The notes beneath the pieces were generated by a model that was given only the letters and a program-made list of their open reading frames with translations, was not told the origin of the DNA and ran no database searches. DNA of 64,000 bases from Macrostomum lignano (taxonomy: Eukaryota): the NCBI GenBank assembly GCA_002269645.1, contig NIVC01001969.1:33530-97529 (forward strand). Reading direction: 5' to 3'. Below, piece after piece: positions 7,601 to 52,664 of this stretch (position 1 is the stretch's first letter; every line of letters starts with the position of its first letter). The position numbers and the translations under genes were made by a program.

Positions 7601-7886
7601 TAAGGCGCCAAAATTGCATTGAGTAAATCGCCAAAATTGCATTGAATAAGGCGCCAAAATTGCATTGAGCAAATCGCCAAAATTGCATTGAACAAGGCGC
7701 CAAAATTGCATTGAATAAGGCGCCAAAATTGCATTGAGCAAAGCGCCAAAATTGCATTGAATAAGGCGCCAAAATTGCATTGAGCAAATCGCCAAAATTG
7801 CATTGAACAAGGCGCCAAAATTTCATTGAATAAGGCGCTAAAATTGCATTGAATAAGGTGCCAAATTTGCATTGAATAAGGCGCCC
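4637..7886. repeat. 23-bp satellite array (~140 monomers) with a 1610-bp (70-mer) higher-order repeat
   Basis: Unit aaaattgcattgaataaggcgcc with variants. Rare variant strings recur exactly 1610 bp apart (5051/6661 and 5881/7491). Confidence 0.97.
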
Positions 7887-12385: not shown

Positions 12386-12419
12386 GCATTGTAATAATAA
12401 GACCCATTGTATATACTTG

Positions 12420-18400: not shown

Positions 18401-20300
18401 TATGGCCCAAGAAATCAATACCAGGATAGAAGGGGATCAGATTCAGACCTTGCCCTCAAATAGAAAATTGATAGCTATGGTTGTAGTCTGATAGCAAGGT
18501 CCCACTGTTCTAATCCCAATTGTATATATATCCAATGAGTTTTAAAGATAGATACTCATGTTTAAAATAATTCTATCATTACCCCTATGCTGCATGCTAG
18601 GGCAACTGGGCATCTAAAGGGTGTTCGAACAGTGCTAAGAATGAGATCTTTTGCATATAGGGGCTTTTGATCTATGTAAGGTTGAGACCTTTTGATTTTA
18701 GCATTGCCGATAGCAGATGCACAGCCAATGGCACATGCACAGCCGATGGCAGAAGTGTGTGCAGCGCAGTGGTGACTATGTGGAGAAGCCTCAGGACAAT
18801 GTTGATAATTAACTTTTGACTGTTCTTTCATCAACTTTAATGTTGCCTGGGTTTTTTTTCGTCCATAACTTGGGCACAATTTTGCACCCTGTGCTAGATT
18901 TCAAGGTGCAATTTTCAAGACCAGGATGCGCTACACTGCTACAGACAAAAACTGGTCTAATACTAATGTGTTTCAAAGTTTCTGTCCATCCAAACCATCC
19001 AATGATGATCCAAATTCCAAATGCTTAACTTAATTGTTTGATCTCCTTATAATTCTCCCCTTAGCCTTAGCTCAGCAGCTCAGCTCACTTAGCTGTCAGC
19101 TCAATAGCAATTAGAAACGCAGCATTGCACTAATCTGGTCTGGTGTCTTGTGACCTTACCTTCATCTTGTCCAGGTCTAGTTGACTGGCTAATTCTAAGA
19201 ATACAAAGTTACAGACTTAAGACATCCATAACATTAAATTGTAAAATCTGCATCACATCCTTGCAAAAAATTCTGGTGTGCTTTTCACACCTTGAGTCAA
19301 ATTTCAGGGTGCAATTTTTAAGACTAGGATGCTATTCACACCCATTCGCACAAAAAAACCCAGCATGTTGCAGATGTTTTATTGATTCATTTAAATGTTT
19401 CATTGTTTTGTACATCAGGTACAAAGCTTTCGTCTATGGCAATTTGTAGAAGTAGCACAGGGGTTGGGGCAGAAAAGTGCTCATATTTCAAGAATGCCAG
19501 CAGATACAGAAATAAATAGAAAGTCATTTTAATGGGCAGATAATTCTTTTATTAGCTGCAACAAAAATATTTCTGATTGGTCAGAAAAGGCTGTAGTAAA
19601 GAAAGTGCACCAACTTTTGGGACACCCTTGTATTTTGTTAAACTAGCATATTTCTATAATTTTGAAAAATATGTTTTTCAGTTGTGAGGTAGGGGTGGAT
19701 TAGATTTCTTGGTTATGGGTGGGATTGTCCGGTGTTTGCTTGATTTAATGTCGAGTATAAGTGGCTCAGGCCTTTGAATCGGCGCTATTGTTAATTTGCA
19801 CAGATTAAATCCAGAAAATTTGTGTGAACAAATCTCAATTGAAATGTCTCGTAGATACTCCGACTGCTGGGGTCCTTAATCCCAGGGGGAGGGTAGTTTA
19901 GTCGTAGCAGAGCAGTCTTCGTTGGCACAAGTGTTCAGAATGTGGCCTCAGACCAAAAGCTTAACATATCTCATATGCTTGACCTGTTACTAACAGTAGA
20001 GTAGTGCTGCCACCACCATAATTTGCATATTACGGAATGTTGAAGTCTCAGAGCTTGCTTCAAGATGAGACTGGGTTATTTCAGTTGAGACTGGGCTTCA
20101 GATTATTTAACAAAATTAGTGGCAGATTAACTGTTTTATTAGAGCTTATGAGCAGTAAGATAATAATTTGCTCAGTCAGCAGAATAGATTGGTGATCATG
20201 CGAAATTAGCTAAGAGTATTAAAATAATAGATGTTGACCAAGCCTACTCTGGCAGATTGATTTGGCTGGGGCTGCAGTGCACTACAATATAGCTAAATGA
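12420..20300. other. AT-rich, strongly CpG-depleted non-coding domain with a CpG-retaining patch at ~15230-15950
   Basis: A manual scan found about 3 CG dinucleotides in 12421-15180 while GC, TG and CA are common. Many CGs occur in 15230-15950. Confidence 0.75.
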
Positions 20301-22274: not shown

Positions 22275-23200
22275 TTATGTTACAGAGATGAGCAAAACTT
22301 TCAGCACTTGGGTGTGTGCGGAGAAATTACAGCTAAATTTCGCATAACACCAAGGATAATTACCTTGAATTTCAACCTCCATTCCAATGTCTGGCAGGTC
22401 CGGATCGTGTTCTTCTAGCACTTCGGGATGGCGCAAGCTCGGTTCAAAGAGTTGGCTGCCTCGCGGATCAGGCTGAGCTGCAGCCTGCGGTTCCGGCGCG
22501 GGCTGATCAGCAGAATCCGATTCGCTTTCCTCGCTGGACTTGTAGGGCAACATCGGCCGCTCAGTCTGTTGCGGCGGCTCCTGCGGTCGTTCAGCCATTG
22601 TTTGCAGCACTTTGATAATATTGTTCCGGTGTACAAGCACTTCAGCTGGGTGACCTCGTCGTGTGGTGGCAGGTCTGATCCAGTAAGCAACTTCGCCGAC
22701 TTTCTTAACAACCTTATACATGCTCTTAAATGGCTGGTGGAACTTGGGCAGTTCTCCCAATTCGAGCTTCGGGTTGGCCAGGCAGACCAGATCTCCAGGC
22801 TGCAGTTCCACAGGCTTTGGCCGGTTCTCATAGTACTCTTCTCGACGTTGGATCTCTGCTCTCAGTCGCTGGCGCACAATACGCTCGGTCTCGGCCAGTC
22901 TGCGCTGATGCTTGGCAATGTACTCTGGAAGGTCAGCCGATACATCCAGGCGGTCTAGGGTGTTGTCGATGGGGTATCGATATGGCACTCCATAGACTAC
23001 ATAGTGCGGCGAGAATCCAGTAGTACAATTGATAGCGGATCTTAGTGCAGTCAAAGTGGCTGGCAGCATCTTGTCCCACTGTTGATGATCTTCTAGGAGA
23101 CAGGCGAGCACCTTCTTAATATTCTTATTGCACGATTCTGCTTGTCCGTTTGCCCAGGGCGAGTATGGCGGCGTCGTTGTCTGCCTGATGCAGTGGACAG
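22275..23200 (-). mobile_element. Ty3/Gypsy-type integrase C-terminal fragment (internally deleted LTR retrotransposon)
   Basis: TTPYSPWANGQAESCNKNIKKVLACLLEDHQQWDKMLPATLTALRSAINCTTGFSPHYVVYG matches the rve core end. It is followed by a GPF/Y-like region (KFHQPFKSMYKVVKKVGEVAYWI...VHRNNI). No RT or RNase H is present. Confidence 0.88.
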
Positions 23201-23927: not shown

Positions 23928-26900
23928 ATGTCATTGGATTTCTACAATATCAGTGTTCGCTATGCACTGTCTTGCTGTGCTGCAGCAATTGCTGAAACAG
24001 GTTGGTGCATCTTTTTAACTGCTTCTTTTACTTGATTTTCCAATTTTTTTGCTGACATTTAGAAAGTTTAGTGTTTCATTCTCATTGATATTTGATGGGG
24101 TAGTTCACTGAAATTAAATGGGGTAGTTACTGAAATTCAATGGGGTAGTTCACTGAAATTCAATGGGATAGTTCACTGAAATTCAGTAGGATAGTTCACT
24201 GAAATTCAATAGGGTAGTTCACTGAAATTCAATGGGATAGTTCACTGAAATTCAATAGGATAGTTAACTGAAATTCAATAGGATAGTTCACTGAAATTCA
24301 ATGGGATAGTTCACTGAAATTCAATGGGATAGTTCACTGAAATTCAATGGGATAGTTCACTGAAATTCAATGGAGTAGTTCACTGAAATTCAATGGGATA
24401 GTTCACTACAAACCCAAGCCTAGTAAGTATCCATCCGCACTCTACTCAATCTGCCCATCAGCCACCTACCCGCTGGACCTGACGAAGACTCGGCTGCAGA
24501 TCACCAATGAGCAACTGCTAGCAGGCAGTGGCTCCGGCAAGACTACGGGAGCGTCTCCATTGATGGCCTCGTCTGCTGGTCAGAAGCGGGTTGGCATGCT
24601 GCGTACAGCATATAATATTGCCACAGAGGAGGGTGAGTCTCAGAGATATGATGTGTCATAAATTTTACGTCTCTTAACAGTATTTTATTTATTTATTTAT
24701 GATGTGTGACTGACTGAAACTTCTATATGAATATCATATCATGATTTATGAATATCGTGATTTATGAGTATCAAAATTTATGACTATCATGATTTATGAC
24801 TATCATGATTTATGACCATCATGATTTATGAATGTCGTGATTTATGAATGTCGTGATTTATGAATGTCGTGATTTATGAATGTCTCGATTTATGAATATC
24901 ATGATTTATGACTCATGATTTATGAATATCATGATTTATGACTATTATGATTTGTGGGTGTCATGGCTTATGATTATCATGATTTATGAATGTCGCGATT
25001 TATGAATGTCGTGATTTATGAATGTCGTGATTTATGAATATCATGATTTATGACTCATGATTTATGACTATCGTGATTTATAAATATAATGATTTTTGAG
25101 TATCATGATTTATTAATATCGTGATTTATGAATATCATGATTTATTAATATCGTGATTTATGAATATCATGATTTATGACTATTATGATTTGTGGGTGTC
25201 ATGGCTTATGATTATCATGATTTATGATTATCATGATTTATGACTATCATGATTTATGAGTATCATGATTTATGAAAATCATGCTCGCCCATCGCCCCCA
25301 CAGGTCCCACCCAGCTGTTTCGCGGCTTGTGCCCGGCAGTGGCCCGTCACTTTGTGTACACCGGCTGTCGCACAGCGTTCTACGAGGCCACCAGGGAGAA
25401 CGTGCTGGGCCGGGATCGGGACGGTCGCTACGCGGCTTGGAAATCCGCGGTTGGTGGCCTCGCTGCGGGCGGCCTGGCGCAGTTCTTTGCCTCGCCTGCG
25501 GATTTGGTCAAAGTTAGTGAGGGGGTGACGCTTTGTTTTGGCAGATCACTAGTGAGAAAATAACTCAGAAACCGGTCCTGGAGTCATGTTACAAATTCGT
25601 ATCGCACTTTTAGACACATCATGTAGAAGTTCAAATCAGTTTCCTAATCAGGAGCTGAATCTGGGCCGCCTGGATAAGAGCCTGGAATCAATTAAACAAA
25701 GAATCAAACAAAAAAAAACATCAAAGAATCAATCCAACAAGCAAACAAGCAATCAATCAAACAATCAATCAATCAAACAAATAAACAACCGATGAAATAA
25801 ACAAACAAAAAAATAAACAAACCATCAAACAAACAATCAATCAAACAAATAAATAAATAAACAATCAGTCGATCATCAATTAATTAATCAAACAAACAAT
25901 CAATCAATCAAGAAATCATTTAATCAAACAATCAATCAACCAAACAAACAATAAACAAACCATAAAACAAACAAACAATCAAACAAACAAATGAACAAAC
26001 AAACCATAAAACAAACAAACAATCAAACAAACAAATGAACAAACAAACCATAAAACAAACAAACAATCAAACAAACAAATAAACAAACAAACCATCAAAC
26101 AATCAAACAAACTAACAATCAAACAATCAATCAAACAAACAAACCACCAAACAGTCAATCAAACGATCAATCAAACAATCGATCAAAAGAAACAAACAAA
26201 CAAACAAACCATCAAACAATTGAACAATCAGGCAATCAGGTAATGAAGCAATTAATCAATTAATCCATTAAGTAAATATTCAATCAACGTATATTAGTAC
26301 TTTCCTATCAACCAAGCAATAAATCAATCCACCTATCGCACACAGATGAATGTTCACGAATCCCCCAATCCCTTTATAAACGCAGGTTGCCATGCAGACT
26401 GAGGGCCGCAGGCGGTTGCTAGGCCAGCCGGCTCGCTACCACAGCGGCCGGGACGCTCTCAGGCAGCTGGTACGCAGCGGCGGCCTGCTTGGCCTGTGGA
26501 AGGGCTGGCTGCCAAACGTGCAGCGCGCCTGCCTGGTGAACATGGCCGACATGATGGCCTACGACCAGAGCAAGAGGGCCCTCCTGCGACACACTGGAAT
26601 GCCCGACTCCATGCTGCTGCACGCCTGCGCTTCTGTCTGCTCAGGTGAGCACAATTCTTAATCTCTGGTGATGAGGAGAGCAGAGCAGCTCAGCGGTAGT
26701 CCGTCACGACCCCTGGTTTGATTCTGTGCAAAAACACTCATTCGACAGTTAGCTTGAAGTACTACTTAGATGACGAAGCATTTAGCCTAGGCATTTAGTA
26801 ATAGTTACTCCTGCCGTTTACCCATAAACATAGGTAAAAACACGCTTTTACTACCGAGGGGCTCTGCAACCAACTATAAATACCAAGCAATATTCTCATT

Positions 26901-29900
26901 TTCCCTGCTATATTTTTACTATCCTACAATTTCATCCCCGCAAATAGGTCTCCTGGCCGCTATCTTGGGCACCCCGGCCGATCTGGTGAAGACTCGCGTC
27001 ATGAATGACTCATCCGGTCACCTGTACCGGGGCAGTCTGGACTGCTTGGTGCAGACTGTCAAACACGAGGGATTCTTCGCTCTGTACAAGGGCTTCGTGC
27101 CAATCTGGATGCGAATGGTGAGAGTTTACGCTTATTTAATTTGCTTCAATCTTTGATCATGTGGTTCCTTAATCCTAGTATTTGAAATTACAAAATAAAA
27201 GCGCACGTTCAGAGCTATTCTCAACTGGTCCCACGCCTATTATTTATCTAGCCCTTACGAAAAACCGCAATCTAACATTTCCCTGGGCCTGAACTAAAAC
27301 TACTTACAGTAGCATAATTCAGGGCTGTTCTAACTTTCTAACCTTATAACAGAAAGTCCCTAGCTAACATTTCCCTGAACTAAAACTATTTGTTGTTGTT
27401 AAACGGGGGTGGGAAGCTTAGCTACCCGCGGATCAGCCCAAGGGAGGGCTCTGCCGCGAGGGGCACTACCAGGTGCCAAGACATTAGCTGTTCAGGGCCC
27501 GAGATACTCCGAGAGACAAGGGAATTGGACCCGGCTCAAAGCGCGGGTGGGCGAAATTGACCCAAGCCTACGGTACAAGACACCGCCAAACCAACAGTGG
27601 AATCAGGGACGGTGCTAGGACCGAGTCCACCCAGGCCACCCCCCCCCCCCAGCTAGCGAGTCTTTGGGAGTGCGCAGAAAAATTGGAAAGCGAAATGCTT
27701 AGAATACTACTAAGAAAGCGGTCCGCGTGAGGAGTTACTCCTAAACCTGCAGAAATGGCTTAAACTATTGGAGCGAGTCTGGGCAGCTAGTTACCAAGAG
27801 CGATCCTATACAAGGTTCAGGGTCCCTGAAGGTCTCGAGCCTCAAGGCTTTTCACTACCCAGCTCTATTTTGGAGTGAGTCTGGAAGGCTTGTATCCGAG
27901 GGGGAGACTCTAGGCGGACATAGCAACACCTCTATTGCTACCAACCCAAGGGCATCGCCTATCCAGCTCATTATTGGGGGCCAGGCCAAGGGGTCAGGAG
28001 AGAGGCACCCAGGGCAAGAGGACTCCGGACTCAGCCGGTAGTCCCCGGTACGAGACGAACATCCTTCCCAGGTTGATTCCCAGGACAGTTAACAGTAGCA
28101 TAATTCAGGACTGTCCTAACTATCTCTCTACCTATAAAAGTCAAAACTCTGTCTGTGTGTGGACAATTTTGATCGCTATGGACTCCCAAACCGCTCAACC
28201 AAATTACACCTAACTTTACACCCACCCTAAACTTACTACGGAGAATGTCTTAGGCTACCTTAAAATTTCCTAAATTTGAGTCTTCCCACCTAAAAGTGCA
28301 AAAAACTGCTCAAAATGCGCGATTTTTTCACTAAATCCTCCATAGCGCCGCTCCACTTCTACCGATTCTCTTCAAATTTGACACAGGCAATTTTAAACTA
28401 TTTTGACACAATCGTGTAAAATTTCAAATCTCAAAGTTAATCCTGAAAGCCGCTGTGCACTTTTAAAGTTAGGCTGTTTTTTTCAGCGTAGCAACCACCC
28501 CAACCTCCGCCCGCCTGCCTCTCTTTCCCGATCTGGGCCCAGATGTGTAAAAGGGGTTTCAAAATTGACTAACTTTCAGCTGCCATAAGTTTGCTCCACG
28601 TAAAGCGATTGACTTCAAACTTGACACAATTCTTTATTGACCCATTCTCTGTCTAAATGTAAAGTTTCAACTCTGTAGCTCAACCGAAAAAGAAACTGTA
28701 AGCATGTGAAGTTTGTCTGCTTTTTCTGTTGTTTGTGCCACTCACTCACTCATTCCCCCAGAGCCAGACGAAGGGTCAGGCGATAGGACTGAATGTACAT
28801 AGCGAATGTACAGTGTTTTGGAATAACTTTTTAATAGCCTTCTCTGTACCCCCGCGAGTGGAGAGGCGTGGAGAGGAGAGAGTTTAGATTCAATTTTAAA
28901 CCACTTTCCTTTCCTCTGAATAGACAAGTCTGCAGCAGTTAAACAAGGATGGCAAATCAAGGCGATGTGGGATGGTTTATAAAAATATCGAAAAATTAAT
29001 GAATAACTTATTACAATGCAATCCTACTAAATTAGTTACACCATAAAAATTTTAACATTAAGATTCGCATAAGGTACTTTAAAATTTAAATGGCCTCCTA
29101 AGAAATGCGTATTTCCATGGTTGTTAGACTGCTGCAGACTGTGGTGGTGGAGCTGGAGATATACAAAATTCTCTCAGCGCTGCTAATTGACCAGAAAGAT
29201 GACGTGATTAAAGCATGGGAAATGATAACAACCATGATAGTACTACGTCCCACAAACTGGCTTTCGAAGCAGGGATCGGCAGATTTTTATCTCAAAGGCC
29301 AGATAAAGAATCCAGCTCATGGCTACGGGCCAGATGAGAGTGAAAAGGAAAAGGAATAGACTATTAGAAAGGGAGAAGGGCGAGAGGGGATAAAAGAAAA
29401 GATAGAAGATAACAGGAGAGACGTACGAGGAGGTTGAGGAGAGAGCAGAGAATATGGGACGAAGAAGCGAGAGGAGGGGAGAGAGAAGGGAGAGGAAATA
29501 GTAGAGGTGAGAAGATGGAGAGAGAAGAGGGGAGAGATGAGACAGAGGATCGATGAGAGAGGAGAGTAGAGAAGAGTGAGATGAGAGAACAAAGAGGAGA
29601 TGAGAGTATCGAGAGGGGGGATTAGAAAGGATAGAGGAGAGGAGATAAGAGGGGGAGAGACGAGTGAGAAGAGAGAAGATAGAGATGAGAGAGAGAGAGT
29701 TGAGAAAGAAGAGAGGACAAAGGAGAGATGATAGAGTAAAGGGAAGAGGAGAAGAGAGGAAAGAGATGAGATTGTAGAGATGAGTGAGATGAAAGGAAAT
29801 ATGAGAGAGTAGAGTAGAGATGAGAGATGAAGGAAGAGAGAGCAGAGTGCGGAGAGACGAGAAAAGAGAATAGAGGGGAGAGAGTATAAAAGAGGGAAGA

Positions 29901-31278
29901 GAAGAGAGGAGTAAGGAAAGAGAGGAGTCAGAAGAGGGGAAAGAGAATAGTACACAGTAGAGAGGAGAGTAGAGATGACAGAAGAGAGAGGGGAATGAGA
30001 GAGCAAAGATGAGAGTGAACAGACGATATAAGAGAGGAGAGAGGAGAGTGAGAGAGAAGAGAGAAGACAAGAGAGGGAGAGAGTATAGAAGAGAGAAGAG
30101 AAGAGACGAGAAGAAAGAAGAAAGGATCGAGTCCTCCTGAGTCAAAAAGGGGAAAGAGAGGAGTACAAGGGGAGAGAGGTGAGAGAACATATGAGAGTAA
30201 AGATGACAGATAAGAGAGGGGAGATGAGAGAGCAGAAACGAGAGTGAACAGACGAGAGATGGGAGAGTAGAGAGAAAAGAGGAGAGATAAGAAATAAGGG
30301 ATGAGAGGTGTAGACAAGGGAGAGATGAGAAGTGAGTGAGGAGAGAGGAGGGGAAGGGAGAGAATCGAGAGGACAGGGGAAATTGGTGAAAAGGACCAGA
30401 GAGGAGAGGAAAGAGGGGAGAGAAGAGAGAGAAGAGAGATAGGATAGGAGAGAGCAGAGAGATGAGAGGAGAGAGTGGACAGAGGAGAGGAAAGAGTTGA
30501 GAGAAGAGAGGAAAAAGGAGAGAGTAGAGATAAGGAAAGTGTTGAGAGAGGGTAGAGTAAGGAGTGAGAAGAGAGGTGAGGGAAGAGAGAGCAGAGAGCA
30601 GAGGGAGAGAGAGTAGAGAGCAGAGAGAAATGAGAAAAGATAAAACAGGAGAAAGGAGATATGAGAGACCAGAGACCAGAGCAAAGAGAGGAGAAGAGAG
30701 AGAAAAGAATAGAGGGGAGAGGGAAGAGACGAGAGAGGAGACGAGAGAGGAGAGAAGAAAGAAGAGATAAGAGGGGAGAGAGAGAAGAGACGAGAGAGAA
30801 GATAGGAAACAGAAAAGAAGATGGAAGTTTCAAAGGATGCAAAGGACATAGGGAGAGGCAGAGGTACGTAGAGGCCAGAGTTTGCCTGACATTCTGTGCA
30901 GCACCCCAGCCAACAATATCAATTTTTGCCTCAAATCCTAATTATATGAATGTACACTATTTTATGTTTAACTCTATCCTAACTATAACAAGGGAACAAG
31001 TTTTTGTTTGAGTTTTACCTCAGATTTTAGAATACATGCAAAAATAATTCCGGGGAATGGAGTTCCCCGGGTTCAAAATTCACGGGTTTCAACAGCTTGT
31101 CTAACCATATTACAGAAAGCCCTTGCTAACATTTCCCTGAACTAAAACTACTTACAGTAGCATAATTTAAGACTATCCTAACTATCAAACTATCTAACTT
31201 CTTCAGGCGCCCTGGTCTCTGACTTTCTGGGTGTCCTATGAGGAGATACGCAGAATCACCGGTCTTTCATCGTTTTAA
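23928..31278 (+). CDS. SLC25A27: Mitochondrial uncoupling protein 4 (SLC25 carrier), 6 exons, 317 aa
   Basis: Exons 23928-24000, 24462-24632, 25304-25512, 26386-26644, 26948-27117 and 31207-31278. All junctions are GT-AG, phases are consistent and the total is 954 nt. Three carrier signatures (YPLDLTKTR, SPADLVKV, TPADLVKTR) plus UCP4 motifs (WLPNVQRACLVNMADMMAYD, APWSLTFWVSYEEIR). Confidence 0.95.
24095..24408. repeat. 23-bp minisatellite in UCP4 intron 1
   Basis: Unit tagttcactgaaattcaatggga, ~13 copies. Confidence 0.93.
24735..25275. repeat. 16-bp minisatellite in UCP4 intron 2
   Basis: Units tcatgatttatgacta and tcgtgatttatgaatg. Confidence 0.92.
25695..26300. repeat. Degenerate (AAAC/AATC)n low-complexity tract in UCP4 intron 3
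   Basis: Runs of aaac, aatc and aaat. Confidence 0.9.
27389..28091. mobile_element. Unclassified ~700-bp GC-rich insertion in UCP4 intron 5
   Basis: Splits the local unit aactaaaacta|cttacagtagcataatt (intact near 27293 and 31140); begins with a ttgttgttgtt tract. Confidence 0.5.
29270..30896. repeat. ~1.5-kb purine-rich (GA) cryptic simple sequence bracketed by hAT/Charlie-like terminal motifs
   Basis: Near-pure G/A strand 29340-30830. Left end cagggatcggcagattttt...ggccagat and right end ggccagagtttgcctgacattctg resemble MER58/Charlie TIRs. No TSD. Confidence 0.7.
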
Positions 31279-31493
31279 TCGCACGACGCGTTGCGGGTTG
31301 CTATGGCGCTTGCACTGACCATTAAATTTGAATTGTTTCACTCTGTTGATATAAAAATTGTGTTGCTTGTTAGGGTTGTCTTTATTCAGGTTCTGCTTTG
31401 CTATTTTTCTATATGTGTTTGTATGTGCGTTATTGTGCTATTTTTTGTTTTCTATTTTTGTATGGATCAATGTCAACTGCAAAGCTCCTTCCA

Positions 31494-32697
31494 GAGTGTC
31501 AGTTGCTGGGCCAGCCTCCCAGAGTGTCAGTTGCTGGGCCAGCCTCCAAGAGTGTCAGTTGCTGGGCCAGCCTCCCAGAGTGTCAGTTGCTGGGCCAGCC
31601 TCCCAGAGTGTCAGTTGCTGGGCCAGCCTCTCAGAGTATCAGTTGCTGGGCCAGCCTCTCAGAGTGTCAGTTGCTGGGCCAGCCTCCCAGAGTGTCAGTT
31701 GCTGGGCCAGCCTCCCAGAGTGTCAGTTGCTGGGCCAGCCTCCCAGAGTATCAGTTGCTGGGCCAGCCTCTCAGAGTGTCAGTTGCTGGGCCAGCCTCCC
31801 AGAGTGTCAGTTGCTGGGCCAGCCTCCCAGAGTGTTAGTTGCTGGGCCAGCCTCCCAGAGTGTTAGTTGCTGGGCCAGCCTCCCAGAGTGTCAGTTGCTG
31901 GGCCAGCCTCCCAGAGTGTCAGTTGCTGGGCCAGCCTCCCAGATCCTCAGTTGCTGGGCCAGCCTCCCAGATCCTCAGTTGCTGGGCCAGCCTCCCAGAG
32001 TGTCAGTTGCTGGGCCAGCCTCCCAGATCCTCAGTTGCTGGCTGGGCCAGCCTCCCAGAGTGTCAATTGCTGGCTGGGCCAGCCTCTCAGAGTGTCAGAT
32101 GCTGGGCCAGCCTTCCAGAGTGTCAGTTGCTGGGCCCGCCTCTCAGTGTCAGTTGCTGGGCCAGCCTCCTAGAGTGTCAGTTACTGGGGCAGCCTCCCAG
32201 ATCCGCGGTTGCTGGGGCAGCCTCCCAGATCTTCGGTTGCTGGGGCAGCCTCCCAGATCCTCAGTTGCTGGGGCAGCCTCCCAGATCTTCGGTTGCTGGG
32301 GCAGCCTCCCAGATCCTCGGTTGCTGGGGCAGCCTCCTAGAGTGTCAGTTGCTGAGCCAGCCTCTCAGTGGCAGTTGCTGGGCCAGCCTCCCAGATCCTC
32401 AGTTGCTGGCTGGGCCAGCCTCCTAGAGTGTCAGTTACTGGGGCAGCCTCCCAGATCCTCGGTTGCTGGGGCAGCCTCCCAGATCTTCGGTTGCTGGGGC
32501 AGCCTCCCAGATCCTCAGTTGCTGGGGCAGCCTCCCAGATCTTCGGTTGCTGGGGCAGCCTCCCAGATCCTCGGTTGCTGGGGCAGCCTCCTAGAGTGTC
32601 AGTTGCTGAGCCAGCCTCTCAGTGGCAGTTGCTGGGCCAGCCTCCCAGATCCTCAGTTGCTGGGGCAGCCTCCCAGATCCTCAGTTGCTGGGCCGGC
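31494..32697. repeat. 28-bp GC-rich minisatellite downstream of the UCP4 stop
   Basis: Unit gtcagttgctgggccagcctcccagagt, grading into ...ggggcagcctcccagatcctc variants. Confidence 0.95.
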
Positions 32698-33472
32698 AGG
32701 CACAATCTTCCCATTCTTCCCATTAGCTTCTGTAAGTGTTTTTCATTCATTTATGGAATCGAATCGAATCACAAATTTAAATTCTGTTTCTATTAAGTGA
32801 TTTTTAAAACGCAAATTCGTTGCATACTTCAGGTGAGACTTATGATGAGGTTAAAAAAGTATTTATGTTTTTCTAAAGAAAGGTACTGACGTATTTTTCT
32901 GTCACTTTAACCACTAGGTATAAAATTTTAAAAAAGAATCGCCTTATAGTATTTGTAGCTTAACACAAAAAGTCGCTGAAAGTTTATGGGTCGAGAATCG
33001 CAAGTCACAACCTCATAGACAATTGCCCATCGACCCAGACCCAGGCACTATCCCGTAGTCTCCCTTGTCTGTCTTTCTAGACGTGATTTGCACTTTAGTT
33101 TGCTTTCGTTTTGATTTTGCTCGATATTTCATTCAACCAAATCGCTGCTATTGCCACGAATCGCATTTTTTATCGATAAAATTACAACTTTGTAAAGTTA
33201 AAAAATTCAATAACTATGCTTATAGTAGTATTTCTAGTTCACTATTAAACAGAATAAATCTGGTGAAATCAGTGCATGATATCATTGGTTCAATTTCATT
33301 AGCAACTTCTAACTTGATGACTGATTGACTTACTAAAGTACTAGTCAAATCTATGCCACTTTTGAAAGAGAAGCGTTTTTCATTTGATTATTTTAGAAAG
33401 TTGTTATAACGATGGTCGGTCTATGATTTTCTGATAAAAAGAGATATAGATGGATACATCTACGCTCGTGTT

Positions 33473-33581
33473 GACAGACAGGTAAAGACTGAGACAGATA
33501 AACAACGACAGACAGGCAGGCCGGCAGACAGACAGACACTAAGACAGACAGATGGATAGACAGACAGATAGACAGACAGAC

Positions 33582-33616
<35 letters not shown>

Positions 33617-33642
33617 TAGACAGACAGACAGACAGACAGATG

Positions 33643-33690
<48 letters not shown>

Positions 33691-34063
33691 CTAAGACAGA
33701 CCAGACAGACAGACAGACAGACAGACACTAAGACTGACAGATGGATAGACAGATAGACAGACAGATAGACAGACAGACAGATAGACAGACAGACAGACAG
33801 ACAGATAGACAGACAGACAGACATACAGATGGACAGACAGACAGACAGACAGACAGACCGACAGACAGATAGACAGACAGACAGACAGACAGATAGACAG
33901 ACAGACAGACAGACAGACCGACATAGACAGACAGTAGACAGACAGACAGAAAGATAGACAGGTAGATAGACGGACAGACGAATACATAGAAGGACAGGCA
34001 GACAGACGGGTAAGGCAGACAGATACACACAAGGACAGGCAGACAGACAGAGGTAGGCAGACA
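33473..34063. repeat. (GACA)n microsatellite
   Basis: gaca/gata repeats; source of ORFs 33393-34093. Confidence 0.96.
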
Positions 34064-34235
34064 ATCAGCAAACCTCGAGTGCGCTTCGAACATCTACAAA
34101 TGCAAAAGAAAACAATTTTTGAGATGAATATCTTGTGAATCGGCAGCGCAGCTGGTATATTATAAGCAGTGGAATTTATCGTTGATATTTTTCTCTTGCT
34201 TTTTCCGTGTCAAAAGTCATCGGCTTGCTTTCTCG

Positions 34236-34542
34236 TCACTTCCGTCCGTCATTGTGGCTGCGATGTCGCCCGCGTTTGAACCTGTATTATTAGAGTGCTA
34301 AGTTGAGTACTTGTGCTAGGTTAAAGTTCAGCTACAGTCGGGGTTGGCCAGCGGTCTCACCTGGGCCGGCTGATGGTCGATAGCAGGTGGCTCATCTGGC
34401 GCAGGTAGCTCTCCAAAGATTCGACATCGTTGAAAACTTCGGGTATGGCCAGCAGGCGAAGGTCGCTTCCATGGCTGTTGACAACCAGGTGGGACCCAAC
34501 GAGCATCATGAGCAGAATTAGTGTATGCCTGATGCTGGGCAT
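34236..34542 (-). CDS. NPF: Neuropeptide F (NPY-family) precursor, 2 coding exons, 75 aa
   Basis: Exons 34542-34361 and 34281-34236 with a 79-nt GT-AG intron inside the Arg codon of RPR|F, the conserved NPY/NPF position. Protein MPSIRHTLILLMMLVGSHLVVNSHG-SDLRLLAIPEVFNDVESLESYLRQMSHLLSTISRPRF-KR-GRHRSHNDGRK. Signal peptide present; 37-aa mature peptide with Tyr 17th from the C-terminus. Confidence 0.88.
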
Positions 34543-35034
34543 TGCTTTGCGAGTTGGAATTATTCGTGAGTTCTTCCAGATCCCAGCGCTCTGTTCAATA
34601 GCCACTACTTTCTGGAGAGAGTTGCATTTATAATGTCGGAGCTAAAATTTTATGACGCCTCAAATTGAATGAGTCGGGTCGCAGCAGTTCCAGACTGGAC
34701 CATGATTGAAACAGTCACTAACAGCTGGATTTGGCAGCTCTGTTGGATGAGCGATTGCTCCGTTGTCTGGACGAGTCGCTCAGAACTGCTGCAGACGTGC
34801 TGCTGACGACAGACACAGATACTACTGGGTTTAGAATGTATCGCCTCTTCAGCTCAATCAGGCACGCGGCACTGCACTCGAAAGTGCTGGCTTGTGGTTT
34901 TTTATTTGCTAGTCTTGATTTTCTTTGCTGTCCTGCGCAAAAGGATTGATGCACTGATTACCATTGTTTGCGAAGCTAAGTTAGTTGAAGCTTCTCTTGT
35001 AAATATGAAAGTTATGGCTCTCAAAAGCATTAAC

Positions 35035-36233
35035 TTCTGATGTTGGTTTCAACCTTCTGATGTTGGTTCCAACCTTCTGATGTTGGTTCCAACCTTCTGA
35101 TGTTGGTTCCAACCTGATGTTGGTTCCAACCTTCTGATGTTGGTTCCAACCTGATGTTGGTTCCCACCTTCTGATGTTGGTTCCAACCTGATGTTGGTTC
35201 CCACCTTCTGATGTTGGTTCCAACCTTCTGATTTTGGTTCCAACCTTCTTATGTTGGTTTAAACCTGATGTTGGTTCCCACCTTCTGATGTTGGTTCCCA
35301 CCTTCTGATGTTGGTTCCAACCTTCTTATGTTGGTTTAAACCTTTTGATGTTGGTTCCAACCTTCTTATGTTGGTTTAAACCTTTTGATGTTGGTTCCAA
35401 CCTTCTGATGTTAGTTTCAACCTGATGTTGGTTCCAACCTTCTGATGTTGGTTCCCACCTTCTGATGTTGGTTCCAACCTTCTGATTTTGGTTCCAACCT
35501 TCTTATGTTGGTTTAAACCTGATGTTGGTTCCAACCTTCTGATGTTGGTTCCAACCTTCTGATGTTGGTTCCCACCTTCTGATGTTGGTTCCAACCTTCT
35601 GATTTTGGTTCCAACCTTCTTATGTTGGTTTAAACCTGATGTTGGTTCCAACCTTCTGATGTTGGTTCCAACCTTCTGATGTTGGTTCCAACCTTCTGAT
35701 GTTGGTTCCAACCTTCTGATGTTGGTTCCAACCTTCTGGTGTTGGTTCCAACCTTCTTCTGATGTTGGTTCCCACCTACTGATGTTGGTCTCAACCTTTT
35801 GATGTTGGTTCAACCTTCTGATGTTGGTTCAAACCTTCTGATGTTGGTTCCAACCTTCTGATGTTGGTTCCCACCTACTGATGTTGGTTCCCACCTTCTG
35901 ATGTTGGTTCCAACCTTCTGGTGTTGGTTCCAACCTTCTTCTGATGTTGGTTCCCACCTACTGATGTTGGTCTCAACCTTCTGATGTTGGTTCCAACCTT
36001 CTGATGTTGGTTCAAACCTTCTGATGTTGGTTCCAACCTTCTGATGTTAGTTCCAACCTTCTTATGTTGGTTTAAACCTTTTGATGTTGGTTCCAACCTT
36101 CTTATGTTGGTTTAAACCTTTTGATGTTGGTTCCAAACTTCTGATGTTGGTTCCAACCTTCTGTTATTGGTTCCAACCTTCTGATGTTGGTTCCAACCTT
36201 CTGATGTTGGTTTAAACCTTCTGATGTTGGTTC
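35035..36233. repeat. 20-bp minisatellite (17/23-bp variants)
   Basis: Unit ttccaaccttctgatgttgg. Confidence 0.96.
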
Positions 36234-36357: not shown

Positions 36358-39300
36358 TCAACGGCGCAGCTCTTGGCAGAAGTACTCCATGTAGACGCTT
36401 GCTGTGCTCGGGTACTCATCAGTGACATCGTCCAGGCTGGTCCCGTCGTCACTTGTAGCGAATCTGTCATACTCGGCGATGTTCCGTCGCATTCGCTCCA
36501 CCACTTCGTCCGGTATGATCATGCCGAAGCTCTCCTTGGACAGCTTCGCTAGTCGACACTTGTCGAGAGCTCGGCAAGTCGCAGCTCGGTTCTCGCTGAG
36601 GACCAGGGCTCGCTCGCCGAAGAATTGGCCTCGACCGATGCGCTTCACCTGCCGATTGCCGATGAGCGCCTCAACTTCGCCTGTCATCACGAAGAACATG
36701 GCGTCTCCCGGTTCGCCCTGACGGCAGAGCACTTCGCCAGCCTCTGTGTTGACAATCTCGATGCTGTCAATTAGCCGATTGACCAGGCTGGGACTGAGAT
36801 GGCTGCAGAACAGTGGAATCGATTTGATCATCTGCTCGAATCGTTCGGCGTTGAATATGGCGCGTCGCTGCTTGAGCCAGGCGTAGCGAAGCGCGTTCAG
36901 CACCCATAATGCGCCGTCGGTGAGGGCTGTGACGGTGGCCGCTCTGGGTCGCTGGTTGATCAGGGAGAGCTCACCTATATAGTCAAATTGTTGTTTGGCT
37001 TAGTTTGACATACATGTAACTGCATGCAACTGTACAAAAAGTACCATTACAATGATTCATGCAAGATGACAATCTATATGTAATCATAGCATTGAGCAAG
37101 ATGACATTCTATGTAATCATAGCATTGAGCAAGATGACATTCTATGTAATCATAGCATTGAGCAAGATGACAATCTATATGTAATCATAGCATTGAGCAA
37201 GATGACATTCTATGTAATCATAGCATTGAGCAAGATGACAATCTATATGTAATCATAGCATTGAGCAAGATGACAATCTATATGTAATCATAGCATTGAG
37301 CAAGATGACATTCTATGTAATCATAGCATTGAGCAAGATGACATTCTATGTAATCATAGCATTGAGCAAGATGACATTCTATGTAATCATAGCATTGAGC
37401 AAGATGACAATCTATATGTAATCATAGCATTGAGCAAGATGACATTCTATGTAATCATAGCATTGAGCAAGATAACAATCTATGTTCTCATAGCATTGAG
37501 CAAGATGACTATCCATGTTCTGATCAAATTGAGCAAGATGACAATCTATGTACTCATAGAATTGAGCAAGATGGCAATCTATATGTAAACATCGAATTGA
37601 GCAAGATGACAATCTATGTTCTCATAGGAATTGAGCAAGATAGCAATCTATATGTAAACATCGAATTGAGCAAGATGACAATCTATGTTCTAATAGCATT
37701 GAGCAAGATGGCAATCTATGTTCTCATAGCATTGAGCAAGATGGCAATCTATGTTCTCATAGCATTGAGCAAGATGACTATCCATGTTCTCATCGAATTG
37801 AGCAAGATGACAATCTATGTTCTCATAGAATTGAGCAAGATGGCAATCTATATGTAAACATCGAATTGAGCAAGATGACAATCTATGTTCTCATAGGAAT
37901 TGAGCAAGATGGCAATCTATGTTCTCATAGCATTGAGCAAGTTGACAATCTATGTTCTCATAGCATTGAGCAAGATGACTATCTATTTTTATGATCAAAT
38001 CGAGCTCATGACGACAATCTTAGCGCACTTCAAATCGCGGATGATGGCAGCCAGTGCTTTTATGCTCACCAAAGTATCCCTCATTCTCGTACTCTCGCAG
38101 AATCTGCTCAGGATTTTCCGATTCGTCGATTGAAAATTTCGACACCGTTTGGCAACGGAATCGGCCTCGCTTAACAACGTAGAAGGCGTCGCCCACGTCG
38201 CCGCAGTGTATGATGACCTCGCCGCTGCGCACCGGCTTGTTGTACATGTACTCGACTACCTTCTGGAGTTTTTTTGTTGGAGAGCGGTACTACGCTAAAT
38301 TAGGACGCTGTTACATCATATCAGCTGGGCATAGCCGCATAAGAGTAGTTTGTAGGGCCTCTGCACGTGTTATACGAGTTATATTGAGGTGTAGTTTAGG
38401 CGAAATTTAAGTCGCCTTAAACTTCTTGTACTTAAGCCAGTGAAGGTGTACTAAATGCATCAATTTTTCGACCCCAAGCCTTAGGACCCCTCATTACCAT
38501 CTTGCACTTCTTGGTTTTTATGGATACATGGATTCGGATTAAGGACAGGAGTTTAAATCTCATAAAATTAACGCCCTCAAAGACTCCTTCCTGTAGAGAT
38601 GAGATCATAATCCTATCCTATGATAATATCTTATATCTAAAGCTGAGTGGATCGATCGACCGGCCGGGTTTAACGCGTATCTCCTCCTAGACGGCTGGCA
38701 ACTCAAATGCGGGACTTATATATATCAATGCAGAATTTTCCTACGCAACAAATAGGCTATTTTAATGTTAAAAAATTAAAAGTTAAGTCCGTTAAAAAAG
38801 CAGAAAACTGTTTTCTTAACCTTCTTTGGCCACTTTGCCTCTTCAGTGGAGGGGTAGTGGCATAATTGTAAAAACAACCACCCCAACCTCCCCCCGCAGG
38901 TCGCTGTGTATTGGAGGGGTGGGTGACGCGTGTTCTGGGTTCAATGCTAATAAAACCCCGCGTGTTGGGGGTGCAGTAAAATTTTATGATTCCCCCGGAA
39001 TAGGGGGGGGGTTGGTTTGGGCTGAGTGTACATAGCAAAGTACATTGTAAGCAGATAGATATGACTGTGTCGAGATCGGCGTCTTTCAAAAGGCAGCCCT
39101 GTGTATTAGCTGGGCAGTGAAATTCAATGAATAAACTTGCGAGCCTCTTACTGTAGGAGGCAGTGACTGTACACTCGATACTTCAATGCTTTAAATCAGG
39201 AAGTTCAAAGGCTAACTGTTCCTTGAGTTTTAAGCTTTAAGAGGAGAGAATTATATTGCTGGAAAGATCTTGCAACGCTGAGTTTGGGGATATAAGTTAT

Positions 39301-42999: not shown

Positions 43000-43720
43000 A
43001 TGCAGTGTAAGATGCTCGCTCTCATCACCTGTGCGATTCTGTGCGCCTTTCTACACTCTGCAGCTGGTAGAGCGGTCGAGTTTGCGTACCTGGGTTGCTT
43101 TGTTGATGGCTCGCCTAGAGATTTAAACGGCCTCTATGGAGTCAGCAGAATTGGGCCGTTTGGCGTTGGCAGCTCGACCGCCTCAAACAGCACCGCCATG
43201 TCGCGTGAGTACTGCGCCGATGTCTGCTCGCTCGGCGGATTCGCGTACTTTGGCGTCCAGGCCGGTGTGCAGTGCTTCTGCGGCAACTCCTACGGATCCC
43301 ACGGAGCCGTTGCTGAAAGCAACTGCGGATCCACCTGCTCAGGAAATGCGGCTCAGAAATGTGGAGGATCGTGGCGCAATTCTGTGTTCGCTCTGACTTA
43401 CCTCAGTTAGTAAACTGCGATTGAAACGGTAAATGGAACTTCGCTGCTAAAATAAAAAACCACTGCCAATCAAACCGCCTATTTCAGACAATTTTTTTCT
43501 TGAAGAAGTGACAACTTCTCTGACTGTTGTATCGAATGGACTGACATCCTGGAGCAGCGCCGCCCGAACCGATATTGAGTGCATGAGCTTCTGCCTGTCC
43601 AACAGCCTGTGCCAGGCCGTGATCTTCTCTAAGCAGCAGCGCCTGTGCCACCTGCTGAGGTTCGCCTACCCGCCATCGAGTCTGAGCAGCATCGATGGAG
43701 ACTTCTTCGTGCGCGGCTGA
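43000..43720 (+). CDS. Secreted WSC + PAN/Apple-like domain protein (cluster gene 1, intact, 212 aa)
   Basis: Exons 43000-43405 and 43488-43720 (phase-1, 82-nt intron). Signal peptide; WSC YLGCFVD...RDL...MSREYCADVCSLGGFAYFGVQAGVQCFCG...C...CGG; C-terminal 4-Cys IECMSFCLSNSLCQAVIFSKQQRLCHLL. Confidence 0.9.
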
Positions 43721-45790: not shown

Positions 45791-46075
45791 ATGGACTGCC
45801 CGTGAAGGTGATAGTGAATCAACTGCTGCTGCTGCTGGTGCTATTTTTATTGATGTTGAGGAACTTGAGGACGAGGGCAATGAAGCTCAAGTTGAAGTTG
45901 TCAATCAACAACAGCAAGTGCAAGGGCAACGTCTGCATCCTTGGCCACACTTGGAATCATATTTCAAACTAAAATTTTTCGAGTCAGGGGTCAATGCAAT
46001 CTTTATCTGCCAACTCTGTCAACCGCTAGAGCAATGCATTAAAGCACATCTCTCAAGTCTACAAGTCTACAAATA
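45791..46075 (+). mobile_element. hAT-like transposase N-terminal fragment (acidic leader + BED-type zinc finger), truncated
   Basis: HPWPHLESYFKLKFF...FICQLCQP...IKAHLSSL resembles BED fingers of hAT transposases. The ATG at 45791 is out of frame and the frame runs into a microsatellite. Confidence 0.6.
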
Positions 46076-46079
46076 CATA

Positions 46080-46942
<863 letters not shown>

Positions 46943-46974
46943 ATCTTCACCATACGTTTCCTGGGAGTAAAACT

Positions 46975-47880
46975 TAACATTTCCGTGCTACTGTAAGTAG
47001 AGCACTGCCATATCTACCGATATAAAAAAGCAAGCAATCGCTTTGCCGAGTTGTTTCAATCCGAGCGTAACAAATTTCTGTAAGAATTAACCATAGTGAC
47101 ACGAAAGAGCTGAACCTTTAAATCGTACAGATTGCCCTGGAGGGCCTGTGCAGGTTGCCGGACTTCAATACATTCAATTGTTTCCAAGATTTTACCTTGG
47201 TAAACTTGCAAATCAGAAAGTGAAACAAAAATTCATGCATACGCTCGTATTGTAAATTTTGGATGATACTGTGAATGTAGTGTACTTGTCTAGTATACTT
47301 TAGTAGTCCTTGGTCAGCTCTTAACGTGTTGTAGACTATTGGTCAGAGCGTCTGACTTACGACTACAAGGTTGGGGGTTCGATTCTTGACCCACTCGGAA
47401 CAATTTGTAGCCTTGAGCAAGAGACATAACTCTGCATTGCTTCAGTTCACCTAGCTGTAAAATGGGTGCCAGCATTAGCTGGGGTAATTGAGGGTGTGTC
47501 CTGGGACCCCTGGACAAAGACCCCCTCCAGTCCTTCAGCTGTTAAGACTTCATAGACTTTGATGCCAAAGCTCACTGGTAATGCTGACATCTACGACTCC
47601 ATAGCTGAATTTTAGAGCTGATGCTTTGCTCTAGAAATGTACATTCGTTTTCTGAGGATACTACCAATAGCAACCTAAATGGTCAAAACCAAAATGTAGC
47701 TGATTCAATAATTAGTGCTTTCTTAAATTGTTGCCTCCCAACAGGGGAAGACGCATATTGTTGGAAGTGGGAGGCTTGCGTGGCATATGTGCCAGTGGCC
47801 CAGGCTCGATTCCTAATGCAGTCACATTGGAATCTTGGCTTGGCTCTGCTCGTGCAATTAATGCTCTTGAGGGCCAGCCC
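46975..47880 (+). repeat. Segmental duplication, copy A (paralogous to ~53590-54545)
   Basis: Colinear shared blocks: gtagagcactg, attgccctggagggcctgtgcaggtt, the SINE, gactccatagctgaattt and gcagtcacattggaatcttggcttggctctgctcgtgcaattaa. Confidence 0.9.
47326..47510 (+). mobile_element. tRNA-derived CORE-type SINE
   Basis: B-box ggttcgattc followed by the CORE-like segment; same family as the 41375 copy. Confidence 0.8.
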
Positions 47881-48767
47881 CCACGGCAGTCAGCGGAATG
47901 GGCAGGGATGCCTCTCATCGGTAGTGTGACAATGTCGCTTGAAATGCGCCAAGATGCAAAAAGCCTCATGTCTCTAATAAAAAATAAATCAAATAAACTG
48001 ATCGGGTAGCTTTAATCTATCCAACCCTTCGCATACCTCTCCCCCCACTTCATTCCTCAACTCAAGTCTGCCGCGGCGTAGCTAAGTTGCGTCACTCGCA
48101 AAGATTGAGAGACTTTACCTGCACTCTCAAAAGTGGCGACCACAGACGGAATCTTTGGACACAATTGCCTGTTATCTTATAACACAATTCCTTGATAGAG
48201 AAATGTCCACTAAGTAGTTGTGTAATATGCAGTTTGCATTGAATCGTACCGTAGACAACACCAGAGTAAAAGGTGTACAAATGCAATTGTAATAAAATAC
48301 CATGGACATAAGCAAACAAGTGCGCAGCTTAAAGTCTGTAAGAGCAGTTAAGAGCAGCGTAGGCACCAGAATTCGATGAATTCATAGAATTGCAAGAATA
48401 CAAGAATAGGTTTAAAGTTATCATGATTAACTGCGCGAATCTTCCGATTGATTCTATTGTCTCCTTATTTAGGGAGAATGCCTGTTATCTTAGTGAAGGC
48501 TTTTTTATGTTGTCTTTTTGTCCATGACAAGTTTACTCGAATAAGGTGATTTTTAAAACTGAAGAAGGAATTGATTCTTAAGAAAATGTCCTCTTTAATG
48601 GATTTGCATGAATCATTTTTTCTCCTTGCTTATTGCGCGCCCCGAAGGGGGGCACTAGATTGCTAGTTTGAGTCTTAGCTTTTGTTTGGAATCGGATTGG
48701 AATCTCATCTCTGCGTGTACGCTCGTACGATAAGAGAAAAACGTTATCGCCATAACATGCAGATATC

Positions 48768-50430
48768 GAAAATCAACCTGGCCGGCGACACTCCAGATGA
48801 GCGCAGAAATGAGCTGCGCGAGTTCTTCGCCGCCATCGTCAACACGCCCCCGCCCCCGCTGCCAAACGATCTGAGGCTGCCGCCGGACACGCCGTTGCCG
48901 GCAGAGAAAAGTTTTAATGTAGCCCCAGTCAGCACAGCCGACGTTGTGAGGCTCGCCCAACAGTCACTGGGCGGGAAAGCGCTGGGTCTGGACGAGGTGC
49001 CCATCAAGGCGCTGCGACTCCACTGTGTAGCCAGCAAGGTCGCCAGTGTGATGAACCGCGTGCTTTTCGGTGAGGCGGCACCCAACGAATGGACCAATAG
49101 ACCACGACACACATCGTCGCTATTCCGAAGAAGCCGTGCACCACGCGGCTTGAGGAGCACCGAGATTGCCTGCCGCCCTGCGCTGCGAAGCTGTTCAACC
49201 GGATGCTGTTATCGCGGTTGCAGCCCGTGCTGGATCCGTACCTGCGTCCTGAGCAGAACGCGGCTTCCGGCCCCACCGCGGCACAGTGGCGCAGATCCTG
49301 GCTCTTCGCCGAGTTATCGAGGAAGCGCGGATCAACTAGTCGAGCCTGATTGCTCTCTTTGTTGACTTCAGGAAGGCTTTCGACTCGGTCGTAAGGGCCG
49401 TGCTCCCAATGGTGCTTCGTGCGTACAACGTGCCAGAGCAGCTGATTTCCGCCGCCATGGCGCTGTATCATGGCACGAACGCTGCTGTGCTAACACCGGA
49501 CGGCATGTCGGATTTCTTTGAGACATCCTCTGGGGTGCTTCAGGGAGATTCGCTTGCGCTGTTCCTGTTCGTCCTTGTGCTTGACTGGGTGCTGCGGACT
49601 GCTTCCCCTTCTAACGACGACGGCTTCCTGTTGCAGCGACGCGTGGGTCGACGCCAACCGGAAAGGCGGCTCAGCGTGCTGGGCTACGCCGTTGATCTCA
49701 CCCTGCTGTCCTCGACCGTCGAGGGCGCCCAACGCCAGCTGGACCGGCTGGTGAGCATTGCGGCGAATGTCGGCCTGGTGGTCAACATGCAGAAGACCGT
49801 CGTGCTCTGCGTGCCGGACGATATTTTTTTCTGCCGAGGCGCCGACGGACAGGCGACGAAGCTTCCGTGCTGTCAGCAGTTCGTCTACCTCGACGGTCTG
49901 GTGCCTGACGTTCGCGAGGGTTGTCCTGCAGTCCAAGGCCCTGCCCGACCGCCAGAGGGCGGCGTTGTTCCAGGCGGTGATTGAGATCGTCTTGTTGTAC
50001 AACGAAACAAGAGACCTGGACGCTGACGGATTCGCTCGAACAGCAGATCGATGAGGCGCACGCTGGCCTGCTGCGCGCCGCCTTCAAGCTCGACTACGAG
50101 CGAGTCACCAATGCGGCACTCTATCGCCGCACAGGCCTGTCCCGTCCCAGCGAACTGTTGCGCCGTCGGCGACTCCAGCTAGTAGGCCATTTTATCCGAG
50201 CCGAGTCCTACTGCCCACAGCCGGTGCAGGAGGTGCTGCTGCTGACGCTACAGGCACCCTACCGGCAGGGGCAAGCGCGTACTCGGCGTTTCGTTGGCTG
50301 CCTTCTGGCTGATGCTGGCGCCCCGTACACTGCCGGCGGGGCGGCTTACGTTCGCGCCCAGGCCTTGAAACGCGCCATGTTACGTTGCCTGCTAACTGAT
50401 TGACAACGTATTTTGTTGTGTTGTTGTTGT
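48768..50430 (+). mobile_element. 5'-truncated, frameshifted RTE-type non-LTR retrotransposon (reverse transcriptase)
   Basis: RT motifs KALGLDEVP, EQNGFRP, LFVDFRKAFDSV, GVLQGDSL and YAVD (YADD mutated), and RTE-like RRRRLQLVGHFIR. (TTG)n tail at 50411-50430; flanking TSD atgcagatAtc (48757) / atgcagatGtc (50431). Confidence 0.92.
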
Positions 50431-51871: not shown

Positions 51872-52664
51872 ATGGAACAGATATCGCGAATTTTGATTTT
51901 ACTCGGCGCTCTGCTCACCTGTGCGACCTGCAGGTCTGTCAATTACTCCTACGTGGGTTGCTACGTGGACTACACGGGCAAGGCCAGAGACTTAGACGGA
52001 CTGACTGGAGTCACCCAGCTGGGTCCGTTTGAGGTTCGCTCAGGCGACCCTCACATAAGAGCAAGCATGACTCTCGAGCTGTGCAGCAGCGCCTGCTCTC
52101 TGGGCGGATTCTCGTACTTCGGGGTGCAGGTTGGTGTCGAGTGCTTCTGCGGCAACTCAATCGGATCGCAGGGCAAAGGCAATGAGAGCGACTGCAACAG
52201 ACAGTGCAGTGGAAACTCGCAGCAAATATGCGGAGGTCGATTTCGAAATTAGGTGTTCGCTCTGACCTACCCCTGTGAGTGACGGGCGATTAATCCATGG
52301 TCAAAAATAATTTTTAATCGACTAGCTCGTCTTTTGAGGCAGCTATTTATTTTTTCTCAAGACCTTATGAAATAGATAGCAGAAAAAACGTGGCTCTAAA
52401 ACTTGTTTATGAATTTTTATTTCAGACCGTTACTACCTGGTTGAGAAGGACAACAGCCTCTTCGTCAAGACCAACAGCACCAAGACCTCGTCCTGGCCGG
52501 CCGCTGTCCATTCTGTCGTAGACTGCCTTCTCCGGTGCAGCACCGCAGCCGACTGCCAGGCTGCCGTTTTCTCCGAGCGGCTGCTCGCCTGCCACCTGCT
52601 GGCGTTCGCCTACCCGCCAGCCGGCCTGACCGGACCCGACTGGACTATCTACCAGCGTGGCTGA
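51872..52664 (+). pseudogene. WSC + PAN/Apple-like cluster gene 2, single premature stop
   Basis: Exons 51872-52274 and 52426-52664. TAG at 52250-52252 where paralogs have Ser (RN*VFAL vs RNSVFAL); the rest of the frame and both splice sites are intact. Confidence 0.85.

Follow-up and report, generated by a model that had tools for sequence, protein, structure and literature searches.

The C-terminal amide is regarded as obligatory for NPY/NPF peptides, and the locus described here raises the question of whether a member of this superfamily that has kept the form of a prohormone gene, and has no glycine to amidate, is a working gene or a decaying one. Within the window, i.e., the whole stretch of 64,000 nucleotides of Macrostomum lignano DNA that was analysed, a two-exon gene of the NPY/NPF type occupies positions 34236-34542 of the minus strand, is structurally intact and encodes a spliced precursor of 75 amino acids. 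An intact family member without this glycine shows either the death of a gene in a duplicated genome or the switch of a hormone to another mode of signalling by a single in-frame change.

The gene and its predicted precursor

By every structural criterion, the locus is a gene. The ATG at 34542 opens the 60 codons of exon 1 (coding part 34361..34542, minus strand), which run from Met1 to Pro60 and end at 34361 with ...AGC CGG CCC AG, the final AG being the first two bases of the Arg61 codon. The intron of 79 nt (34282..34360, minus strand) is of the GT..AG type, begins with GTGAG and closes with TAATACAG (...ACAG, acceptor at 34282), thereby splitting the Arg61 codon as AG/G. Exon 2 (coding part 34236..34281, minus strand; G TTC AAA CGC GGG CGA CAT CGC AGC CAC AAT GAC GGA CGG AAG TGA) supplies the last base of Arg61, Phe62, Lys-Arg, the stretch GRHRSHND, Gly-Arg-Lys and the TGA stop, and the spliced product reads MPSIRHTLILLMMLVGSHLVVNSHGSDLRLLAIPEVFNDVESLESYLRQMSHLLSTISRPRF-KR-GRHRSHND-GRK, followed by the stop. 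Rereading of the minus strand returned the same coordinates for an intron within the Arg codon as had been given in the original prediction. Both splice sites agree with the local consensus, i.e., the AG/GTGAG donors and AG/GT acceptors of the cNMP-binding and carrier genes of the window.

Upstream of the gene, a TATAAAT motif (34626..34632, minus strand), 84-90 nt from the ATG, is a possible independent promoter, and such a heptamer can also arise by chance. Downstream, no canonical AATAAA or ATTAAA lies within the 170 nt past the stop, where GATAAA and AATATA are the only variants found. The gene occupies approximately 900 bp of unique sequence flanked by repeat arrays, a (GTCT)n array directly on its 3′ side and another array on its 5′ side. 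Micro- and minisatellite arrays are very dense in the window (33393-34093, 34981-35813, 4420-8061, 29243-32800, and 45918-46977).

The precursor opens with a putative signal peptide of residues 1-23 or 1-25 (MPSIRHTLILLMMLVGSHLVVNS/HG; 34468..34542, minus strand). The original prediction also had a signal peptide here. Its leader comprises a basic n-region and a hydrophobic core, and two candidate cleavage sites, VNS/H and SHG/S, both satisfy the -3/-1 rule, by which the cleavage site was judged by eye. The leader passes straight into a single NPF-like peptide, His24 or Ser26 to Phe62 (34278..34473, minus strand, interrupted by the intron), which runs for 37-39 residues without an intervening cleavage site and carries the Pfam, Moniezia and profile matches described below. 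The predicted length of 37 residues holds if cleavage occurs after Gly25; cleavage after Ser23 would give 39. Straight after Phe62 come Lys63-Arg64 (34272..34277, minus strand), which complete an R-F-K-R sequence, a convertase site of the R-X-K-R form, with no Gly codon. The remainder (34239..34271, minus strand) is the C-terminal flanking peptide GRHRSHND and then Gly-Arg-Lys, an amidation-type signal located directly before the stop, and here exon 2 reads as previously described.

If the gene is expressed, and if its NPF-like product is processed according to the general rules for prohormones, four steps would be expected. The signal peptide would be cut off after Ser23 or Gly25. A prohormone convertase would cleave after Arg64, because R-F-K-R is a full R-X-K-R site, and a carboxypeptidase would trim Lys-Arg. 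The 37-39-residue peptide would then end in ...SRPRF with a free carboxyl group, as the lack of a Gly leaves the amidating enzyme PAM without a substrate. From the 11 residues that are left, GRHRSHNDGRK, Arg-Lys would be trimmed, and the resulting octapeptide could then be amidated, as GRHRSHND-NH2. Both the free-acid NPF and the amidated octapeptide are predictions from such rules. The free acid of vertebrate NPY is not known to be active at Y receptors, and by analogy little agonist activity at canonical NPF receptors would be expected of the free-acid peptide of M. lignano.

Homology to the NPY/NPF superfamily

Homology of the gene to the NPY/NPF superfamily, to which it had originally been assigned, is well supported, because a sub-threshold Pfam match, an independent profile, a shuffle control, the identity to Moniezia NPF, the intron position and the splice sites all agree. 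Pfam Hormone_3 (PF00159) covers residues 34-62 with an E-value of 3.1e-5 and 24.3 bits, which is under the gathering score of 28.7; the recorded Pfam match is also absent from some accepted planarian members of the family (NPY-3 and NPY-7). The independent profile was built from 12 flatworm NPF/NPY sequences, with the window's own protein left out. By this profile, exon 1, at 18.7 bits (E 2e-4), ranks first among the window's 2,521 stop-to-stop ORFs. None of 100 first-order Markov shuffles of the window reaches that score (best 13.9), and the spliced product scores 24.1 bits (E 4.4e-6). The profile alignment contains a single gap, which falls exactly at the Gly column (RPRF-KR vs RPRfGKR).

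At the level of single residues, the C-terminus SRPRF conforms to the Arg-X-Arg-Phe/Tyr pattern of the family, and R59, P60, and R61 are invariant in the alignment with related peptides. The intron interrupts the codon of the Arg located just before the terminal aromatic residue (AG/GTGAG...ACAG/G TTC), a hallmark of the NPY family that ten npy genes of the planarian share with those of vertebrates (Collins et al. 2010, PMC2953531). Three positions, numbered backwards from the C-terminal residue (here Phe62), define flatworm NPFs: a Tyr at -17, a Tyr at -10 and a Gly at -5. The first is kept as Tyr46, whereas position -10 is occupied by Leu53, both as originally predicted, and position -5 by Ser. 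With no amidation signal behind Phe62, the gene should be called NPF-derived rather than a canonical NPF.

RPRF-amide and a length of 36-40 residues are the norm for flatworm and mollusc NPFs (review, PMC6389622). Like the M. lignano peptide, the NPFs of Moniezia expansa (NPF_MONEX, P0005) and Arthurdendyus triangulatus (P0008) have 36-39 residues, a YLRQ or YLRN motif, Tyr at -17, and RPRF at the end. In a BLASTP comparison of the precursor with Moniezia NPF, 11 of the last 27 residues are identical (41%; pair E 2e-7), including YLRQ and RPRF. However, the Moniezia and Arthurdendyus peptides end in RPRF-amide and carry Tyr at -10 and Gly at -5, whereas that of M. lignano has Leu and Ser at these positions and no Gly to amidate. 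We note that probe peptides served only to retrieve real database sequences; the Moniezia and Arthurdendyus entries matched their probes, and that of Cornu aspersum (Helix) differed at one residue (RTRF vs RPRF).

A close likeness in gene organization is provided by npy-1 to npy-11 of the planarian Schmidtea mediterranea (PMC2953531), which likewise encode a leader, one NPY/NPF peptide and a short or absent C-terminal peptide, and contain the intron in the Arg codon. Short tails are ordinary in this family: Smed NPY-3 also has 75 amino acids, with the tail QKFHRD, and NPY-10 ends in GKR-stop. All of the planarian genes encode a Gly and a basic site or stop behind the terminal residue, whereas in the M. 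lignano gene KR comes straight after Phe. Even npy-11, already classed as 'atypical', keeps its Gly; with VSRPRLGKR, it has the Ser-Arg-Pro-Arg context in common with the M. lignano gene.

The 75-residue product matches UniProt A0A1I8F6P0 ("Neuropeptide-Like Protein", Macrostomum lignano) with 100% identity, which marks the window as flatworm DNA and not as that of an arthropod, which the term NPF might bring to mind. This entry and the window may both come from one assembly, so that the match provides no independent confirmation. An exact look-up in transcript and genomic contigs returned nothing for this product, for the 82-residue and 61-residue genomic ORFs, or for a neighbouring ORF of 181 residues. 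Among 1.84 billion representatives, HMMER found only the protein itself and P0003; the latter, a tandem-repeat protein of 1,256 residues, was rejected as a relative, the match being a compositional artefact. A word-indexed search with the single sequence gave back only its own entry, and two profile searches retrieved NPFs of Moniezia, Arthurdendyus, planarians, molluscs and metagenomes, with no second member from M. lignano among them.

The absent glycine: a working paralogue or a decaying duplicate

In exon 2, the Phe codon TTC runs straight into AAA CGC (Lys-Arg), with no Gly codon in between, in accordance with the original reading of R-F-K-R-GRHRSHND-G-RK-stop. A Gly follows the last residue in 11 of 11 planarian NPY-family prohormones and in every other retrieved sequence that extends past its terminal residue, and against this background the loss of the Gly looks like a loss-of-function change. 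Either of two single events could have brought it about. A GGN codon may have been deleted from an ancestral RF-G-KR, or 30 nt (34248-34277) may have entered an ancestral RF-GRK-stop. Removal of these 30 nt leaves F-G-R-K-stop, which resembles the ending of planarian NPY-10, and the insertion would explain why a clean amidation signal stands at the very end of the precursor. As the window contains no donor copy or repeat of the 30 nt elsewhere, the insertion route remains an idea.

The reading that we favour, with moderate confidence, is that of an intact, divergent NPY/NPF paralogue of M. lignano that gives rise to a non-amidated peptide. No damage is seen in the ORF, the start codon, the hydrophobic leader, either splice site or the dibasic site. 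Such a paralogue would have left canonical NPF-receptor agonism, and it departs from the canonical peptide also at Tyr-10 (to Leu) and Gly-5 (to Ser). Seminalplasmin/PYY2 is reportedly a duplicate within the NPY family that lost the canonical amidated C-terminus, through a C-terminal frame change, and is expressed in a different, non-receptor role, a function that is said to have been shown experimentally. This vertebrate protein offers a precedent for neofunctionalisation after the loss of amidation. Bovine seminalplasmin is peptide YY2 (PMC2698874). A search of the literature brought up nothing relevant on NPFs that lack the amide or on 'NPY free acid'.

A second possibility, which we hold only tentatively, is that of a freshly inactivated duplicate, in which one in-frame change removed or displaced the Gly of a redundant NPF paralogue that is now drifting towards a pseudogene and has no part in signalling. 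A degenerating duplicate is a sufficient explanation of what is observed. It accords with the retention of the Gly by every comparator that extends past the terminal residue, with the loss of two further conserved positions (Tyr-10 and Gly-5), and with the lack of a canonical poly(A) signal in the 170 nt past the stop. In the planarian, which is free-living and related to M. lignano, NPY-type genes have expanded to 11 copies (Collins et al. 2010, PMC2953531), and M. lignano itself is described as a hidden polyploid (PMC10468722); a divergent or decaying paralogue is therefore at least as likely as a new class of ligand. Against inactivation stand the intact ORF, start codon, signal peptide, splice sites and dibasic site, and the tail that finishes in a clean Gly-Arg-Lys-stop. 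In addition, the gene diverged from other NPFs long ago and still carries no disabling mutation.

On the same strand, approximately 19 kb downstream of the gene, lies what may be a decayed NPF-like fragment, which would also fit a degenerating duplicate. This ORF of 19 codons, NLNKLNNEYQIVVGRPNFS followed by a stop (15103-15047, minus strand), is similar to the C-terminal part of flatworm NPFs, with a score of 15.4 bits against the independent profile (E 0.002), and shares 65% identity with planarian NPY-8 over 17 residues. It outscores 300 of 300 shuffles of the AT-rich block in which it is located and 100 of 100 shuffles of the window, and is accompanied by no leader, usable acceptor, Arg-codon intron, Gly or dibasic site. 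It may be the relic of a second NPF-type gene or a match driven by composition; if a relic, it fits a birth-and-death turnover of NPF genes at the locus. The AT-rich block (12000-19000) spans approximately 7 kb and has a GC content of 0.32-0.33, compared with approximately 0.45 in the remaining window.

That M. lignano expresses a non-amidated NPF-type peptide which is conserved throughout the genus, acts on another receptor or as a competitor at NPF receptors, and is co-released with a new, His/Arg-rich amidated octapeptide, GRHRSHND-NH2, seems doubtful to us; no other signalling peptide of the NPY family is known to work without its C-terminal amide, and this one would be the first. Transgenesis (PMC7053086) and RNAi (PMC4490696) are both feasible in M. 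lignano, so that the working paralogue and the decaying one can be told apart directly by experiment.

Alternative exons, gene models and processing

It is quite unlikely that the missing Gly is an artefact and that RFG(K/R) is present in the true mRNA or genome, whether by way of an unseen exon or in a Gly codon that the assembly dropped. What speaks for an unseen exon is a second UniProt model, A0A1I8GIK4 (420 residues; in the same 90% cluster as A0A1I8F6P0), which joins the same donor to a different, distant exon, so that the gene models at this locus are unstable. By tblastn, the whole of this model is placed in the window: it comprises a cyclic-nucleotide-binding (cNMP-binding) gene located upstream of the NPF-like gene (38262-36364), then exon 1 of the latter, and a last exon at 26634-26422. 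However, this last exon (26422-26634, minus strand) lies opposite, in antisense orientation, to coding sequence in an exon of a mitochondrial-carrier gene, and the model bypasses the natural stop of the cNMP-binding gene (CGC CGT TGA, at approximately 36358) by way of a weak GTTGAA donor (36358-36364). On both grounds, the fusion in A0A1I8GIK4 looks like an artefact of gene prediction, and the 75-residue model appears the better one.

The carrier gene, which is UCP-like and has at least three exons (25327-27156, plus strand; Pfam Mito_carr), is oriented towards the NPF-like gene in a convergent manner and closes the locus at 25.3-27.2 kb, which restricts the space available to another exon; the original prediction, which implied a UCP gene on the minus strand, is corrected on this point. 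A strict pattern scan of 20 kb of downstream minus-strand sequence found no AG-(A/G)-TTY/TAY-GGN acceptor, which would supply Arg-Phe/Tyr-Gly. The next 700 nt contain 20 AG sites, of which the one at 34281 alone gives Arg-Phe followed by a dibasic pair. A relaxed scan, allowing any residue followed by Gly and a basic residue, gave 10 matches, located in repeats or beside the carrier gene; none had Phe or Tyr, and all were set aside as chance, including one at 28532 that would read R-S-G-K-R. The earlier failure to find an alternative RFG exon downstream is thus reproduced by the strict scan over 20 kb and by the relaxed one.

Nor does the sequence of exon 2 point to an error of assembly. Typical assembly errors are 1-nt indels, and a clean 3-nt change is not typical of them. 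When the other frames of exon 2 were read, no indel of 1 or 2 nt restored RFGKR; only an insertion of 3 nt would do so.

Similarly improbable is a different route of processing, in which the precursor would be cleaved after KRGR (Arg66), the Arg removed and Gly65 amidated, giving ...SRPRFKR-NH2 with a C-terminus unlike that of an NPF. The sequence F-K-R-G-R-H does place a Gly-Arg right behind the dibasic pair, and the known rules permit monobasic cleavage with a basic residue at P3. However, R-F-K-R is a full R-X-K-R site, which convertases cut in preference, and should therefore be cut first. Least credible of all is a chance resemblance of an ORF unrelated to NPF: the peptide is short and its Pfam score lies under the gathering threshold, but the profile E-values, the shuffle control, the position and phase of the intron, the leader and the dibasic site coincide.

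The practical value of these observations is modest, in that two public gene models are corrected and one candidate is flagged for peptidomics. Elsewhere in the window, a large single exon at 10820-12385 (minus strand) belongs to a ZMIZ-type gene, with a ZMIZ GBD-like domain and a MIZ/SP-RING zinc finger between Gln-rich flanks. Remains of retroelements include fragmented reverse-transcriptase ORFs (Pfam RVT_1) at 48682-50403 (plus strand), and an ORF of 278 residues at 22275-23111 (minus strand), which has no Pfam match, looks like the C-terminal region of a retroelement pol/integrase. A cluster of paralogous genes for secreted WSC-domain proteins is located at 43000-43410 and 51872-52252 on the plus strand and at 55985-56692 and 59086-59421 on the minus strand; the WSC domain was confirmed by Pfam for two of them, and one also carries a PAN domain.
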